From the NCBI RefSeq assembly GCF_000150275.1, contig NW_002060943.1:1726832-1790831 (forward strand): a stretch of 64,000 nucleotides of DNA, read 5' to 3'. Numbering within the stretch: the stretch's first letter is position 1; the number at the start of each line of letters is the position of its first letter. Made by a program: the position numbers and the translations under genes. The DNA comes from Trichoplax adhaerens. Taxonomy: Eukaryota; Animalia; Placozoa. Shown piece after piece: positions 4,601 to 64,000 of the stretch. A model generated the notes under the pieces. That model ran no database searches. It was not told where the DNA came from and saw only the letters and a list, made by a program, of their open reading frames with translations.

Positions 4601-7600
4601 TGAAATAATTCAAAAGTATTAACTGTATTAAGCCTAAATCATAGTTATCTTAGCTAAGGTGGATAAATTGGAGTTAGCATTATAAAATAAAATTCCATGA
4701 AACATAGCAAATCTGTCGTCCTCCTGTAAAGTTATTTTGACATGGATTAACAGATTGGATAGAGGAATATTTATCTTTACATAGTTACTGCGATATTGTG
4801 CAATGTGTACCATATGTTTAGTATTATCGAAATTGGTTCATACTTTATTATTATATGAATAAATACAAGCATACATAACATAGTAGAAGATTCAAGAAAG
4901 ACCTACAAAAACAATTATACAACCTAATTACTATATCTGTAATCTTTACCAGATTCAAAAAGATCTTGCCGTTATAAAGTTACTTCTATGCTCTATTGAT
5001 ACGAATCAATTCGTATCCTAAGTCGGCAATAGCACATATACATTAGAGGAAATTATAGCCTTGTTAACACCACCTATATGGCTAGTTTTTTCATCAGAAA
5101 ATTTGTTACTACTCTTATCTGCCTCTATCGTAATATTACTAATAGTTTTCATTCTCTGCAAAGGTAGAAACTAGGGTGATCATGCCTGCTTGTTTAACAC
5201 TTTATTTCATGATTTCATTTAAATTTCAGTTTACTTCAGTATTTTGCCACGATTATTGAGGTAATTTAAAGTTATTTTACCGTATTATCATTTAAGCTAA
5301 CTGTAATAGCGATTACCGCTAACGATTGATGATACTGTACTGTATGATAGCTTTTATTAATTTTTAAAATATTGCATAACAAGCATTAGCAAATACAACT
5401 TATGTTGAGAAGGTCAATATCAACTCTAATGAATTGGCATTAACATTCTATTATTCCCCCGTGGAAACAGATTCGGCGATTAATTGTAGTAACAGCTGTC
5501 ACATCGGAATAACCTGTATAGGATCAACCGGTGTCATCAAAATTTTATTAATTAAACTGAAATATAACTTTACTCTACATATCTCAATGTCATATTGCAT
5601 GTTTGCAGAAGTAGCAGGTTTACGAGTACAAGTGCAAGGAAAAGCAGATTTCATAATGCTTAAAATAATCCAATACTATTCTAATTCAAGTTTGTAGATA
5701 TATCTGCCCCAGATTTAGTAACACTAATAAAAATCACTTACTGGATACGATCCAAATGATACGTTATGTGTCAATTTTTGTAATAAGCACTGCTCCATGA
5801 TCTAGTTCATTTAATCGTATTTACTTACCAAAGATGTAGTGGGCTGATACCATATTGTGCCTAATTATTAAAATATTAACAGATGGCTTACGGCATGTAA
5901 TAACTTTATAGATCCTGTATGATGAAATTAGGCAGACTTTATTGGAATACACCAATACGCTACCATCCTGCTTGTCTTCATGACTGGATAATCGCTGTAT
6001 TGCAAATGTTTCTTAGAGCAAATATGAATCAGATTCAATATCAACAATAATAACGAGATATGGATGCATGTATCATACCATCATATGGTAGATACTTTCA
6101 AGTTCAATATTGCAATCAAACCGATAACTTTAATTCACTACTTTAGGCTTTAAAATTTCGACTGTAAAATTTATACTGGTTGCTAAAAATAGATCTATTA
6201 CTATAGTCATACATAATCTGATTTATTATTTAATATAAAATCGCGTATTTAACCTGCGCTTCGAGATAATCTCTTTCTAATTTATACTAAAATAGATAGA
6301 TTTGTAGCCCTGAATAGTCTACAAGTGACGACATTATAGCATTATATTGGATTAGCGTGATTTAATTCTACCATCTGTGTAGTGAAATTAATTCAACAAA
6401 ACTGTTCAAGGAATAAACTAATTTTTAATCTTCAGTGTTCTGAACAACGTTATTAAAATCTATATCTTTCTATACTATATATGTAATTCATGTGTACTAG
6501 TTATAATATAAGTGATTGTAATACATATATCTATGTTACCTATAAATTTATATTGATGTACAATTAAAAAAAGTGTAGTGCTACCACTGTATTAAAGTAC
6601 TGCTCTGTGGCTTAGCATTACGTTATATAAAATTAATATATCGCTGACGCATAACGTATATCATAAGACGAGTATTCAATATACATTTGGAAATTTAATA
6701 GCAATTAGATTCTTAAATTGGTTAGCAAAGTTGTTTTCCGAGTATCTCAAGCTGGAAGTGGCCACCATCTTGTACGCATATACGCGTATATCGTATAAGA
6801 TGATAATATGATCAATGATTACGTTATCACGTTGTATCACTAAAGTGGTTATCATTTTAATTGCGTTTATTCAGTGAATGTTAGTTGAAAATCAAATTTT
6901 TCTTACATATAATTTCTACGAATAATTTACCTTTAAAGCAAAAATTCCCGAAAAATAGATCGCTAAACATTAGAATTTTACTTTCCTGTACCATTTCATA
7001 GCACAGAATTATCATTATGTACGCGGTTAAAATTCATTTTCTTTAATGATTAAGATATTTGCGATTTGGTGTAGATTTTTGAAAGTGTACTGAATGCACT
7101 GAGTGACTTATTGCAGTAATTAAAGAAGATTTACGACGTTGACTACGTGGATCACTAATACTAAGCGATAAGCAGATACCATTCCACCACAATTAAATTG
7201 TGACAGCTGTAGCTGCATATGACATCCAAGTAATACTGTAGCATAGAAATTGTTACATAAATTGCACAAGCCTTCACGATTAAAACCGGAATGTATCAGT
7301 CTCTCCTCAATTGAGCAAATCTAATATGATTTATCTTCCCAACAAACCTCAGAAAATAAAGGATTACTAGCCTAATTATTTTGAGGTTCGCTAGAATCAC
7401 ATTCCATCTCACACATAGTTCTATTATAATTATAAATAAGTTTTAAGTTTTATAGCGATCGTTCCCTTTGCAAATCAAGTGGCATTTCAGTAGAAATTAG
7501 CATGTTGTACCGTAACTTAATTATTATAGTGACAAATAGTTATAGTATAGTCGTTGTTGACAATAAGGGGAAGTTAGTTCAGCCAAGGGACTGCGATATT

Positions 7601-57700: not shown

Positions 57701-60306
57701 AATTAATGACTCAAAAGTTAATCCTATAATTCCATCATATAATTATGCTAATGCCTACTTTATGGTTGAAATAATGCGACAGAAAGCATTTATTTGGATG
57801 ATTACGTGACTACGGCCTATCAACATATTCTAGCGTTAAAAATGGATCGAGGACATGTCAAATCAGGTCACAGTCATCTATTATTTTATTAATTTTTACG
57901 AGGAAATAGCGGAATAAATGAACTAATCATGTAATAAACACACTATAGGATTAAATATTTTTATAATCATAATCAGCCCTCCTGTTACCTTAACACCTTT
58001 TCTAAACCTTAATCCTATAGGAAAACGCCATACTTTAAAAAAGGTAAAGTTACATGATCCATTTCATGAAATAGAATGCTGCAATATTAACAAGGGCGAT
58101 ATAATCATCATCTATCCGACGCTCAATCTATCCTACTTCTTGTATCTGTACTATCATCATAGAAGAGCAAGGTCTTGCAGGGCAAACAACTACTGCTATA
58201 TCCTGTTGAGCTAAAAGTTAAAGCTTAACTACATGAGCAAGGGCAATAGGATCATCTCTCACCTCCAATTCACGATCCGTTCTACTATTATCGCATCTAT
58301 GCTTAATTCCACCTGATCATGTGGATGCTTTAGTTGCAATATCCTAATGAGCTAAATTGAGCTTAGGTATATTAACAAGAAAGTGTAGTCATTACCCTAA
58401 ATTTGAGTTCTGCTCATTTATTTATTTTTAATTTATTTCAAATAGAGCTAATTATTAATCAGTGAATTATAAAAACTTGCTTTCGTTTTATTTGATTCAT
58501 ACATAGGAATCCAATACTCTTATTTCTCGTAGTAATTCCTTACTACACTAATTATTTGGTGAGGATCTGGTCTAAAGCTTCATCATCATACTAAACACTA
58601 ACACATCCTAGAATCGCTAAATTCTATATTGAATAGATTAACTTTTTATTGTCTATACAAATGGAAGGCCTTGCTTAGCCATTCCACATTAAATATAAAT
58701 TTAATACAGGACAATCGCCTACCGATGACTATTAAAATTTATGTTATCTATTTTCTGGTAATGTAGGCAAAATGATCACCACTAAATTAAGAGCTAACCT
58801 ATCTTAGTAGACCTTACGTATCAAATAAACGAATCCGTCATATATGCAAAAATATATGTCATGATTAGTTATTCGAAACTAAATATATATTTAATACAAT
58901 TTAAACGTTTGTCGTTAACCATTTTATATATCATGTAACAATTTTGTTGAATAATTGATAACTATACGGCCAAGCTACCTGTACCGTCCTTAAATGCTAA
59001 AACATCTTCTTACGTCTAAATTATATATCAAGAAAATTAATCTGTTGTATATATATACTGTACGTTCGCCGTAACAACAGATAGAACGCCATGATTGCCT
59101 ATTCAATATTGCATATAAACTTAATATACTCCAACTGTCTAACGATGACTCTTTTATTTACGAGTGTATCACGTAACCATTAATTCTATATTAATTATCT
59201 GATGACAATGTGATCAAAAACGTTGGGAAAAATACTAAGTACCATATCTTGCTACGTCTAATAAACAGCCCCATTTAAATTGTGTTAAGTAAATTTTTTA
59301 ATAAGGAAATTAGCTTGTAAGCAAATGTGGTGATGAGGAAGAAAGGATTTAAGTAGTAAATAAGAAGGAAATATAAACGGTACAGGATGGAAATTTCGCG
59401 CAGTTTATAAAGGTTAGAATGAGTCTTCATCATATAGAAATCAGGAATTGTATTGGAAGAATGATAGCAAAATAAAGAACTATGATCGCCGTATACTCTG
59501 GATTTAATATCTATGCTATATATATTAAACAGGTAATGAATAGTATGAAAGTATATTATAAGGTAGTGGCTAAGAGCTCTTCACAAACATGTTTACGAAA
59601 GTGTTCGAGACTAACGAGAGCATTCAAAGAAGATTAATAACCCAAGAATCGAAATAGATATGGCTAAATTTGATATCAAGTAGATTTATATTTTATGATA
59701 AAAATCATTAGGTCATAGAGATCATTGCGATATTGAATTGAAGTTGAATATAGTCGATTTGCTTGACGATAGTCATTTTATCTATCTCTTGCTTCAACTC
59801 ATTTTATGATTAATATTTGATGAAGTTCCGAGCAAAAATATCTTCCCATACTAATTTTCTACCGTATACTCATATACTAGTAGAAGGTCATGGTTATAAA
59901 TTAGAAATGGCCTTAATTAATTTACAGTCTATCTCATTTCTATTTAAGTCATTTTATCCTTATATCATTACAGGTAAAAAGAAATATTTTCACCGCAATG
60001 GATAATATCCGTAAGCAATGTTGATCGCTAGAGCATAATGTGTAATTGAATTCTGACATATCGTCAGTCAGATCTGTTGTCTAATTTATCTGACTTTCAT
60101 GACAATCAATCCTTAATTGTCGCCCATTACCAGCGCTTATTTGATTAAGATTTACATTTTAATCATTCTAATTCAATCATTAAACAAATTATTCGGTAAA
60201 CAGTAAGAGCGGTAAATTGTTGACATAAGGAAAGATAATTGACTTTGATTGGATTAAAATCAATCTTTGAATTAGAATGATCTCCTAATTCGACTCTCTC
60301 AAAGCT

Positions 60307-60313
60307 TATAAAA
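60307..60313 (+). promoter_or_regulatory. TATA box of the lysozyme gene
   Basis: TATAAAA 68 nt upstream of the ATG. Confidence 0.6.
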
Positions 60314-60380
60314 GAGAGAGGAGATTGATTTCTAATTTATATCTAATTCGACTAGCTTAATAGATAGGCTGTCTAGTAAC

Positions 60381-63206
60381 ATGATGAAGTCTGTAATTCT
60401 TTTATCCGCTTTTGTCGCCGTGGGTAAGAATTATTTTACAAGGGTTAAATTTCTTTCTTGATTTCAATTCGTGTTTTCCAACGGGCTATTAGTATTGTAG
60501 AAGAGTTAATTGTGTAAGATACATCTTTTTTCTATACTATTGAGCATGATTAATTAAAATCTTAATATGAATCGAATCCATTACCGCATATAAATTAATG
60601 ATCCTTGCTTTTTTCTCTTAGCTTTTGCCGCACTTAATGACGACTGTAATGCTGGTCAAGGTTCTTGCCAATATGATTCTCAATGTTATACCGGCACTCC
60701 AGCCAGTGGATTATGTCCTTACGATCCCAGTAACGTCAAATGTTGCCCAAAAGTCGGTAAGATATAGCTAGAAATACCATCAATCTCTACCTTTAGGATT
60801 ATTATGCATAGTGTAGTATGAATTGCTACAATTTAAACATTCCGCTGTAACTATGCTGAAGGTTTCTACTTCGCATGACATAAAATTGTACCTACAAGTG
60901 GTTTATTAACCAATTTAAATTGCTCGTGAGCATGCTTTTACAGCAAATGCAGAAATGCCATAACTTACTCTAGAGGGGGTCATCATTTAATGGCTTAGGA
61001 AAAGTAAAAAGGAAATATTTAAAATTAGATTCTATCGTTCATCATCATAATTAATTATTTATTGAATTATGAATTTAAAACCCTAGAATATTTCTATAAC
61101 AGGACTTCCTTTTCCTCATTTTCAATGTTGTAATATCGTTTGTAATCATTAATAATATTAATCCAATTATTGTCCGCAAAAATAGCTTTTTTAGAATTAT
61201 AATAGTTGCTCGTACTACATAGTAATGTAGACTAGCAATTCCATATTTTTTAAGGATATTATCTGCGAAAAAAAGGACCACCAAAATTTATTAACTAAAT
61301 TATTTTCCGCAAATATAACTTTTTTCAGAATCTTAATATTTTGTTATACTTCATTATGATGTAGACTAGCAATTCAATATTTTCAAGCATATTATTTACG
61401 AAAAAATAAAATACAAAAATTATTTACCCAATTACTCATCCGCAAAAAAAAACTTTCTCCAGAATCTTAATAGTCAATTGTGCTCATTACTATGTAAATA
61501 GCAATTCATTATTTTTAAGGGTATTATCTACGAAAAATGGACTACCAAAAATTATTTACACCATTATTCTCCGCAAAGATTACTTTTTCCGTAATCTTAA
61601 TAGTCATTTGTACTTTATCACGATGTAGACTAGTAATTCAATATTTTCAAGCATATTATCTACGGAAAAATAGATTATTTCAAACTCTTTCTAAAATAAT
61701 TTGGCGGATGACTATATCCTGCGTCTATTTCTATCTACTTTAATTGCATTTTCTAAATCATTTAACCAAGATTATCCTTGAATATCGTTCACTTTAGGTC
61801 AAAGCTGTAAAAGTAGCACTGGCAACTGCATGTTGACAACCCATTGCGGTGGTACAACCTATTCTGGCTACTGTCCAGGCCCTTCTAGTGTTCGCTGTTG
61901 CGTCTCCAGTAGCGGTAGTGGCGGTAGCTACCCAACTAAATACGGTGATTTCATGAGAATCAACCCCAGTGGTGCATCATCAGCTACTGCTAGACAAGAT
62001 GGTCTTTCATACTCTGGTGTTGCTGCATCAAACAAATTGGCTTCTAACGATTATAACCGATGTCTCCGATACAAATCACAGTTCCAAAGTGCTAGCTCAA
62101 GCACTCAAATCCCAGTTGGTCTTATCACCGCTATAGCCAGCCGTGAATCTCGTTGTGGTGGTGCTTTAGATTCTAATGGATATGGTGATCATGGTAATGG
62201 ATATGGTTTGATGCAGGTAAATCTAGACGATAGTTATATCATTTAAAATACAGAGTTCTAATTATGATTATTTGCCTATACTCTATAGTTCGTTCATTTC
62301 ATGTGATATCGAGAGATCATGACCTAGTATTTAGATTACAAGATGAGTATAGCAGATTAGCGTTCTTCTATAGAGAATAAAAGTTTCATTAATTTATAGA
62401 CAATCAATGGAATGAAAATAAACCAAATTTTTAGATACGTATGTAGTGTCATGAAGCCAAACCAAAGCTTAAGATCATTTCACGTATCTAGACTATGATC
62501 GCAAAAATTTCTGATTAATTTAAACGTTATAATTCCATTGCATAAGCTTTTAAATATGGAAATAAAGTCATGATACTAAACTTCAAGAGATTATGACTCA
62601 GTGGTTAGATTATATAATAGGCATAGCAGATTTAGCAATCTTCTACAGAGAATAGAGTTTCATTAATTTGCAAAGATAATCCATGAAATAAAAACCAATC
62701 AGATTCTCTCTCGATTCAAATTTTTTATGCAGTAATATGAAATCAAACTAAAGCTTACGATCATTTCTTGTACCTAGACTACGATCGTAAAAATTTCTTA
62801 TTTACTAGGACATTATGTTGCATATGGCTCTAAAATATGGAAATAAATAAGCAGACTAAACAAAAATCTTCTCAAAATAGGTGGATAAAGTCGTATTTGC
62901 TCCTATAATTGTTATTATTTCTTTGAATAGGTCGATAAACGTTATCATTCTCTACAAGGTGGACCATACAGTTCAACTCATATCTCCCAAGCTACTAACA
63001 TTTTGATCAGTTCCATCAACGGTGTTGCTAACAATCATAGATCCTGGACCAAAGAACAACAAATGCAAGGTGGTGTTGCTGCCTATAACTTTGGTGTTAG
63101 CAATGTGCAAAGTATTGGTGGTATGGATATTGGTACTACTGGCAACGATTACTCCAATGATGTCGTTGCTCGTGCTCAATGGTTCCATAATAATGGCTTC
63201 AACTAA
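60381..63206 (+). CDS. Secreted goose-type (GH23) lysozyme with signal peptide and two N-terminal 6-Cys modules, ~290 aa; exons 60381-60423, 60622-60756, 61798-62216, 62931-63206
   Basis: Signal peptide MMKSVILLSAFVAVAFA. G-lysozyme motifs YGDFMRINPSGAS, AIASRESRCG (catalytic Glu), GYGDHGNGYGLMQVDKRYH (both Asp), WTKEQQMQGGVAAYNFG, MDIGTTGNDYSNDVVARAQWF. 873 nt in frame. Confidence 0.96.
61168..61680. repeat. Diverged tandem repeat, ~132-bp unit, ~4 copies, in lysozyme intron 2
   Basis: GTAGACTAGCAATTC-like core near 61227, 61361, 61494 and 61625; TCCGCAAA near each unit start. Confidence 0.85.
62310..62850. repeat. Diverged ~277-bp tandem duplication in lysozyme intron 3
   Basis: Collinear matching blocks (ATAGCAGATT..TTCTA.AGAGAATA..GTTTCATTAATTT; AAAGCTTA.GATCATTTC..GTA.CTAGACTA.GATCG.AAAAATTTCT; AAATATGGAAATAAA) each occur twice. 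Confidence 0.85.
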
Positions 63207-63323
63207 ATACATGTACAACTACTCAGTTTTCTATTCCACTAAAACAGTCAAATACCCTGTCTGAGGTTTAGATTAATTTACTCTTTGTTCTTGATAATAC
63301 TACTTCAATTGTCGTATTTCTAG

Positions 63324-63359
63324 AATAAATGTTTGTATTGGAGTAGATAGTTCAATAAA
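63324..63359 (+). terminator. Polyadenylation signals (two AATAAA) of the lysozyme gene
   Basis: AATAAA at 63324 and 63354, ~120-150 nt after the stop codon. Confidence 0.55.
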
Positions 63360-64000
63360 AGCAATTAGCAACTTCTATCAGTTTGTTTTAATAAATTCTC
63401 CACCTAGTCGAAGTTAGCAGAGCGACTGGTATGTTATACCATAAGGGGAAAATGTAGTAACCTTATACAAGGATCATATCATAAATTTTGATACTCTCGT
63501 ACAGTTGCTTTCTTATGTTGCTGATTAATTCTTAGCTTCTTCTGAAATTTATCGTGTTAGTGATCACTACGATTTTTCAGTAGAAGGATCAAACTCTGGT
63601 GTTATTGTTTACATGCGAGTCTAACTTACTATAAATTTATTCTTACCTTCTTACAACATTAGTATCGATGATATTAGGATTTTGTAGTGAAACATCTGGA
63701 ATTTGATGCTAAGTTCTCCATAGTGGCAATAATACTAGGATTTTAAGTGGAATACCTTGCTTTATCCTGCAGGCTTATTTCACCATCTTACAGTACCGAC
63801 AATTGTCGTCTCTTTTAGAGTTTTTACCGCGAATTTACAAACTCTAATACCATCACTTGCTTCTATTACATGGTTAATCCCACCTCCTTGTATAATAGTA
63901 CTCTTAGTATTAGTAAAGTAGGAAATGGTATTTTGATCTTTAAGCAGCAGCTGTTATTTTTCCTCTATTTTTAAAAATCGGCTTACTGGCTTAGGTTGCA

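Follow-up and report, generated by a model that had tools for sequence, protein, structure and literature searches.

The PLys gene of Trichoplax adhaerens: a known g-type lysozyme with a tandem cysteine-rich repeat domain

The closest described counterpart of the gene analyzed here, a g-type (GH23) lysozyme gene in a 64-kb stretch of the Trichoplax adhaerens genome (contig NW_002060943.1, positions 1,726,832 to 1,790,831 of the forward strand; hereafter the window), is the placozoan lysozyme PLys, an enzyme of extracellular digestion in an early-branching animal of which an account has already been published (Berndt et al., 2026; PMC12855814). Muramidase activity was seen for native extract as well as for recombinant PLys, and the enzyme is secreted by ventral gland cells into the acidified feeding groove (PMC12855814). 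It kills B. subtilis, but not E. coli (PMC12855814). PLys’s N-terminal domain was modeled as “two repeated beta-sheets” and contains six disulfides in this model, and its modules were referred to the “cysteine-rich repeats” (CRRs) of Daugavet et al. (PMC12855814). These repeats are known from placozoans, corals, and basal chordates, whose rusticalin-like proteins carry two CRRs between a signal peptide and an M15-type L-Ala-D-Glu peptidase (Daugavet et al., 2019; PMC6339383). A subsequent jackhmmer survey recovered 382 CRR proteins, 301 of them fungal and 69 metazoan, with phage lysozyme, amidase, and peptidase M15 as the commonest partner domains and NlpC/P60 also found (Daugavet et al., 2020; PMC7379824). 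The CRRs share with the PLys modules a pattern of six cysteines ending in CC, conserved positions of Gly and Pro, and a tandem position behind a signal peptide. Like PLys, CRR proteins fuse these modules to bacterial-type cell-wall hydrolases; the family is mostly fungal and its metazoan members are patchily distributed. What the module is and where it comes from, the question that an earlier reading of the window without database searches (the sequence-only reading) had singled out for checking, had thus already been answered in print (PMC6339383, PMC7379824).

The locus in the window is the PLys gene itself. Compared by eye, its exon translations agree with the precursor sequence that Berndt et al. 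(2026; PMC12855814) give for PLys, and the landmarks of that paper (Ser100, Met112, and residue 256) fall on the gene coordinates computed here. Two UniProt entries, A0A369RX22 from Trichoplax sp. H2 and B3RIZ1 from T. adhaerens, represent the same gene with the same Ser100 site, Met112, and GH23 domain; at residue 256 the window carries the Ser of B3RIZ1, whereas Trichoplax sp. H2 has Gly. In the published experiments the full precursor was made from the H2 entry and the trimmed construct, beginning at Met112, from B3RIZ1 (PMC12855814). In this genome, the exons for the signal peptide and the modules are intact (window 60381–60756 and 61798–61952); should B3RIZ1 lack them, it would therefore be the gene model that is truncated and not the gene. 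Consistent with the literature, a search of the whole genome (105.6 Mb, 1414 contigs) recovered a single g-type lysozyme locus. The sequence-only reading had noted that a placozoan GH23 lysozyme with an N-terminal cysteine-rich domain had been reported; this is PLys (PMC12855814), and the reading was correct. Earlier publications already cover the gene and its processing as well as the module family, the beta-defensin-like character of the modules, and their spread on hydrolases. Our additions to this record are small and consist of an exon plan shared with a second Trichoplax gene, purifying selection on both modules, and the ordering of one module type within arrays. The present analysis supplies the structure of the gene, the identity of its domains, the catalytic residues, the predicted fold, and the distribution of the family; activity, cleavage, stabilization, and localization are taken from Berndt et al. 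(2026; PMC12855814). Together, we consider it very probable that PLys is a pre-pro-lysozyme, in which the defensin-fold CRR pair is a stabilizing pro-domain that is clipped off within the linker.

For the gene model, the region 60000–64000 of the window was read directly and translated frame by frame; translation, searches, and fold prediction were done one exon at a time, and the model is the sum of the four. The DNA is AT-rich and eukaryotic in composition (GC 0.29–0.40 over the window). The sequence-only reading had placed its feature at 60622–61903, a span that takes in both modules, but the gene itself runs from 60381 to 63206 on the + strand, to which all PLys coordinates given here refer, in four exons with introns that are all canonical GT..AG. 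The exons add up to 873 nt of coding sequence, equivalent to 290 codons and a stop, and the 290 residues begin with a signal peptide and two six-cysteine modules, which a Ser/Gly linker connects to a complete lysozyme of the g-type (GH23). Exon 1 (60381–60423) opens with two consecutive ATG codons, encodes the hydrophobic signal peptide MMKSVILLSAFVAV plus one base of the next codon, and ends in phase 1 at the donor GTAAGA. The symmetrical exon 2 (60622–60756; 135 nt, phase 1-1) encodes the first CRR; from Cys to Cys this module 1 extends over 60645–60746 with the spacing C-x6-C-x5-C-x9-C-x8-CC, and it is of “type A” with the motif CPYDPSNVKCC. Module 2 sits on a separate exon. This exon 3 (61798–62216) encodes module 2 (61806–61901, Cys to Cys; C-x6-C-x5-C-x8-C-x7-CC), the Ser/Gly linker VSSSGSGGSYPTKYGDF, and the N-terminal half of GH23, and exon 4 (62931–63206) adds the C-terminal half, including Ser256, and the TAA stop codon. 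Both six-cysteine strings named in the sequence-only reading, along with their spacings, were recovered letter for letter on the + strand, and a loose C..C..C..C..CC pattern matched nowhere else in the six frames of the window than at modules 1 and 2.

The part of exon 3 past the linker aligns with residues 4–95 and exon 4 with residues 96–185 of the same 185-residue g-type lysozyme chains (E down to 2e-19 and 5e-26, respectively), among them the solved lysozymes of ostrich, goose, swan, cod, and salmon. Counterparts of the three catalytic residues that were sought, goose Glu73 plus Asp86 and Asp97, are all present, as the PLys GH23 domain keeps Glu176 in an SRES motif (62145–62147; alignment to 3wyh and 4g9s), Asp190 in a GYGD motif (62187–62189; aligned with goose Asp86), and, already in exon 4, Asp201 in a QVD motif (62934–62936). 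Glu176 we take to be the equivalent of goose Glu73. The end-to-end alignment and the three retained acidic residues bear out the earlier claim that the GH23 domain is catalytically intact. Vertebrate g-type lysozymes (goose 153L, ostrich 3WYH, cod 3GXK, salmon 3MGW) resemble PLys over the whole catalytic domain and in the catalytic residues, but they have two disulfides in this domain, whereas PLys has one (two cysteines, C148 and C179), and they possess no N-terminal module domain. The absence of this domain, also noted in the sequence-only reading, follows from the solved vertebrate chains, which begin only at the end of the linker. A Pfam scan of the single PLys exons gave no match to SLT (PF01464); the exon-3-like protein fragment P0038 matched this profile at E 0.0077, too weakly for the curated cut-off.

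According to top-down and N-terminomic mass spectrometry, the most abundant native PLys proteoform starts at Ser100 and is devoid of the N-terminal domain (PMC12855814). On the gene, the Ser100 codon was computed to lie at 61917–61919, which places this published cut between Gly99 and Ser100 of the linker, after VSSSG and before SGGSY; Met112, the start of the trimmed construct, was computed to lie at 61953. The precursor melts at 50–60 degrees and the trimmed enzyme at 25–35 degrees, a gain of about 25 degrees in melting temperature through the N-terminal domain; at the pH optimum, activity with the domain attached is about three-fold lower (PMC12855814). Of the three functional options in the sequence-only reading, the cleavable pro-domain is the one that has been demonstrated experimentally, by the cut before Ser100 (PMC12855814). 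In the proposed sequence of events, the signal peptide would route PLys into the secretory pathway of the ventral gland cells. The pair of tandem modules behind it, each rich in disulfides, about 35 residues long, and probably beta-defensin-like in fold, would make up a compact N-terminal domain that the Ser/Gly linker connects to the muramidase. This domain would stabilize the precursor at the cost of activity, and the cut before Ser100 would then yield a more active but less stable mature enzyme, which would digest the cell walls of Gram-positive bacteria in the acidified feeding groove.

For each of the two modules, a beta-defensin-like fold is predicted. AlphaFold2 models built with alignments of 29–30 rows of natural relatives had a mean predicted local distance difference test (pLDDT) of 79.6 for module 1 and 84.7 for module 2, and structure comparison of the two models returned almost only beta-defensin-fold structures; for module 1 there were only four matches, three of them from the beta-defensin-fold set. 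The structural neighbors include big defensins, the double beta-defensin AvBD11, and, for both models, the amylase inhibitor helianthamide, at 15–29% identity over 33–40 aligned residues, values that would fit, in an indirect way, a match of most or all six cysteines. Using HHpred, Daugavet et al. (2019; PMC6339383) had found similarity to the family and fold of the beta-defensins for single CRRs, and to the tick carboxypeptidase inhibitor TCI (1ZLH) for the CRR pair. At the sequence level, a Pfam search at E ≤ 10, run on the individual exons and on ten module-only relatives, identified neither a defensin family nor any family for the module, a PDB sequence search with a profile of four modules at E ≤ 10 gave no match, and an ESM Atlas search with module 1 gave no usable one. 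The cysteine spacings of the modules (x6, x5, x9, x8 and x6, x5, x8, x7) are close to, but not the same as, the canonical C-x6-C-x4-C-x9-C-x6-CC. Compared with the beta-defensin-fold proteins hBD2, hBD4, the oyster big defensin C-domain, the platypus DLPs, helianthamide, and AvBD11, the PLys modules have no sequence-profile relationship, longer C2–C3 and C4–C5 loops, and a near-neutral instead of a cationic character, and they are part of a hydrolase precursor and not free peptides. The description “beta-defensin-like” in the sequence-only reading thus stands for the predicted fold and the approximate spacing, but it found no counterpart in a Pfam defensin match or in the charge.

The net charge of module 1 is −1 and that of module 2 is +2; for 447 modules of the family the median charge is +1, with 45% of the modules at 0 or less and no more than 16% at +3 or higher. 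Membrane-active beta-defensins are cationic. It therefore appears improbable that the cleaved modules are free defensin-type antimicrobial peptides working alongside the lysozyme, even though the predicted fold, the presence of big defensins and AvBD11 among the structural neighbors, and a natural cleavage that parts the domain from the enzyme (PMC12855814) would be compatible with such a function: besides lacking the charge, the modules match no Pfam defensin profile, the full precursor is inactive on E. coli (PMC12855814), and the free domain was not detected. Helianthamide as a neighbor of both models and the HHpred likeness of the module pair to TCI (PMC6339383) raise a different idea, namely that the tandem modules are an enzyme inhibitor which either damps its own hydrolase up to the time of release or blocks bacterial or prey enzymes. 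The three-fold lower activity with the domain attached (PMC12855814) would agree with the former, but as the precursor keeps high residual activity (PMC12855814), we give little credence to an inhibitory function.

The distribution of the modules was determined with a profile of the four Trichoplax modules, which was searched against 1.84 billion representative proteins and retrieved 501 representatives at E ≤ 1e-3, 85 at E ≤ 1e-10. Among the best 150 of these 501, the partner domains recognized by Pfam were Phage_lysozyme (15), Phage_lysozyme2 (6), VanY (5), NlpC/P60 (5), and Amidase_2 (4), and further GH25, M23, GH19, Muramidase, Peptidase_M15_3, and Tae4. The two named family matches, Ascobolus immersus and Coprinopsis marcescibilis, are both fungi. 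These results match the statement in the sequence-only reading that CPxDPxNVKCC repeats occur on fungal or protist hydrolases, and the search for partner domains that it had proposed found, in the form of this profile search, homologous modules on other hydrolases. A fusion of CRRs to a GH23 g-type lysozyme was represented among the best 150 family members only by the placozoan PLys fragment P0038, which is a 169-residue exon-3 fragment and the only representative of the PLys cluster in the set searched. In the module alignment (A1) the invariant columns are C8, G13, C15, C21, G24, G29, C31, P35, C40, and C41, and the spacing of PLys module 2 (6,5,8,7,0) is the third commonest of 447 modules. 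Arrays contain between 1 and 19 module copies in the best 150 of the 501 family members. Of the same 150 proteins, 24 have a module of type A, characterized by an eight-residue C4–C5 loop and the motif CPxDPxNVKCC as in PLys module 1, and in 23 of them this type stands at the head of the array; the adjacent order “AB”, where type B denotes a seven-residue loop, occurs 13 times and “BA” never. Across the family, CRRs might serve as a eukaryotic adaptor for secreted bacterial-type cell-wall hydrolases.

A genome-wide search found exactly four CRR exons in Trichoplax, and these belong to two genes. The only CRR gene besides PLys is located on the − strand of a second locus (L007 5891–7751; G000:C1388); its last exon is Peptidase_M15_4-like (E 7.9e-5), and it is evidently the rusticalin-like gene of Trichoplax; a phmmer search with the two Trichoplax M15-peptidase exons revealed no rusticalin-like orthologue among the best 150 matches. 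Both genes follow a common exon plan: the signal-peptide exon is of phase 1, the exon for module 1 ends in CCPKV+G, and that for module 2 starts with G+QSCK. Module 1 of the rusticalin-like gene is of type B (CAGPWNIQCC), as opposed to type A in PLys, and the second modules of the two genes are 80% identical in protein and 72% identical in DNA; among their 34 codons there are 12 identical ones, 16 with a synonymous difference, and 6 with a non-synonymous one. Recent gene conversion between the two loci was considered and rejected, since the DNA identity is only 72%, 16 of the 28 codons for identical amino acids differ synonymously, and the introns are unrelated. Similar protein sequences encoded by diverged DNA, together with unrelated introns, instead point to an old shared cassette under selection, and the CRR pair may have been recruited to PLys as a ready-made exon cassette that it has in common with the M15 peptidase gene. 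An orthologue of PLys on a contig of another placozoan (L008), which was found through P0038, has kept both module exons. Between the two orthologues, synonymously and non-synonymously changed codons number 14:2 in module 1, 16:6 in module 2, and 66:14 in the lysozyme domain. By these ratios the pro-domain is as constrained as the enzyme, and both modules are under purifying selection.

Such conservation would also be expected if the modules were peptidoglycan-binding targeting units, comparable to LysM or SH3b domains, and cleavage merely freed the enzyme. This explanation would account for partners that, in the best 150 family members, are overwhelmingly peptidoglycan hydrolases, for arrays of 1 to 19 modules as are typical of avidity-based binding modules, for the near-neutral charge, and for a second module that remained 80% identical between two Trichoplax hydrolases in spite of 16 synonymously differing codons out of 28. 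However, with its modules attached the enzyme is not the better one: at the optimum the activity of the precursor on Micrococcus cell walls is three-fold lower, it does not surpass the trimmed enzyme on B. subtilis (median lethal dose, LD50, 130 nM for the precursor vs. 100 nM), and the commonest native form carries no module domain at all (PMC12855814). We therefore regard targeting by peptidoglycan binding as a rather unlikely function of the CRR pair in PLys.

A stabilizing pro-domain of defensin fold remains the interpretation that we favor, although several observations weigh against it. The precursor retains most of its activity (9 vs. 11 U/pmol at pH 5.0; PMC12855814) and hence is not a true zymogen, and peptides were reported only from Cys75 onwards, with none for module 1 (PMC12855814). 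The Z-scores of the fold matches are low (2.0–2.8), as is expected for 37–44 residues. Foldseek, a check suggested in the sequence-only reading, turned out negative, as it found no significant match in the PDB for either module model; the best rows for module 1 had E 4–9 and included platypus DLP-2 at a template modeling (TM) score of 0.42, and module 2 yielded no rows. The fold predictions may also be steered by the cysteine pattern. Finally, a constraint equal to that on the catalytic domain suggests that the modules do more than stabilize a transient precursor.

This last point leads to a more far-reaching interpretation, which we put forward tentatively and hold to have somewhat less than an even chance of being right. 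The CRR would constitute a mainly fungal branch of the beta-defensins (“trans-defensins”) that has not been placed in that superfamily, with arrays that begin with a type A cap followed by type B, and would have been selected as a functional adaptor of secreted cell-wall hydrolases; in placozoans it would have been shuffled as a cassette between the M15 peptidase and lysozyme genes. Because they are constrained like the catalytic domain, the modules would moreover have a conserved role beyond that of a disposable pro-peptide. Hundreds of bacterial-type cell-wall hydrolases in eukaryotes carry CRR modules, yet the only role of these modules tested to date is the thermal stabilization of a precursor. 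If there is indeed a beta-defensin-fold branch in fungi and metazoans with a binding or regulatory role, this would bear on the origin of defensin-type domains, and likewise on how horizontally acquired hydrolases are adapted to eukaryotic secretion.

The regions flanking the PLys coding sequence contain two putative expression signals. A TATA-box-like motif, TATAAAAG, is located about 70 nt 5′ of the start codon (60307–60314), and an AATAAA that is likely the polyadenylation signal follows about 120 nt 3′ of the stop codon (63324–63329); both functions are assigned from the motifs. Intron 2 of PLys (1041 nt) harbors a 132-bp tandem repeat in 3.8 copies with 76% match (61164–61671), and its counterpart on the L008 contig measures only about 540 nt. 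The introns of the rusticalin-like gene are filled by dense ACAGTAC/GTACTGT arrays (L007 ~6280–6470 and ~7100–7180). In front of PLys exon 4, the acceptor and first codons at 62925–62940 (gaatag followed by GTCGATAAAC) have a near copy 50 nt upstream, at 62874–62890 (aaaatag followed by GTGGATAAAG). Use of this upstream acceptor would shift the reading frame, and it thus looks like a decoy or the relic of a small duplication.
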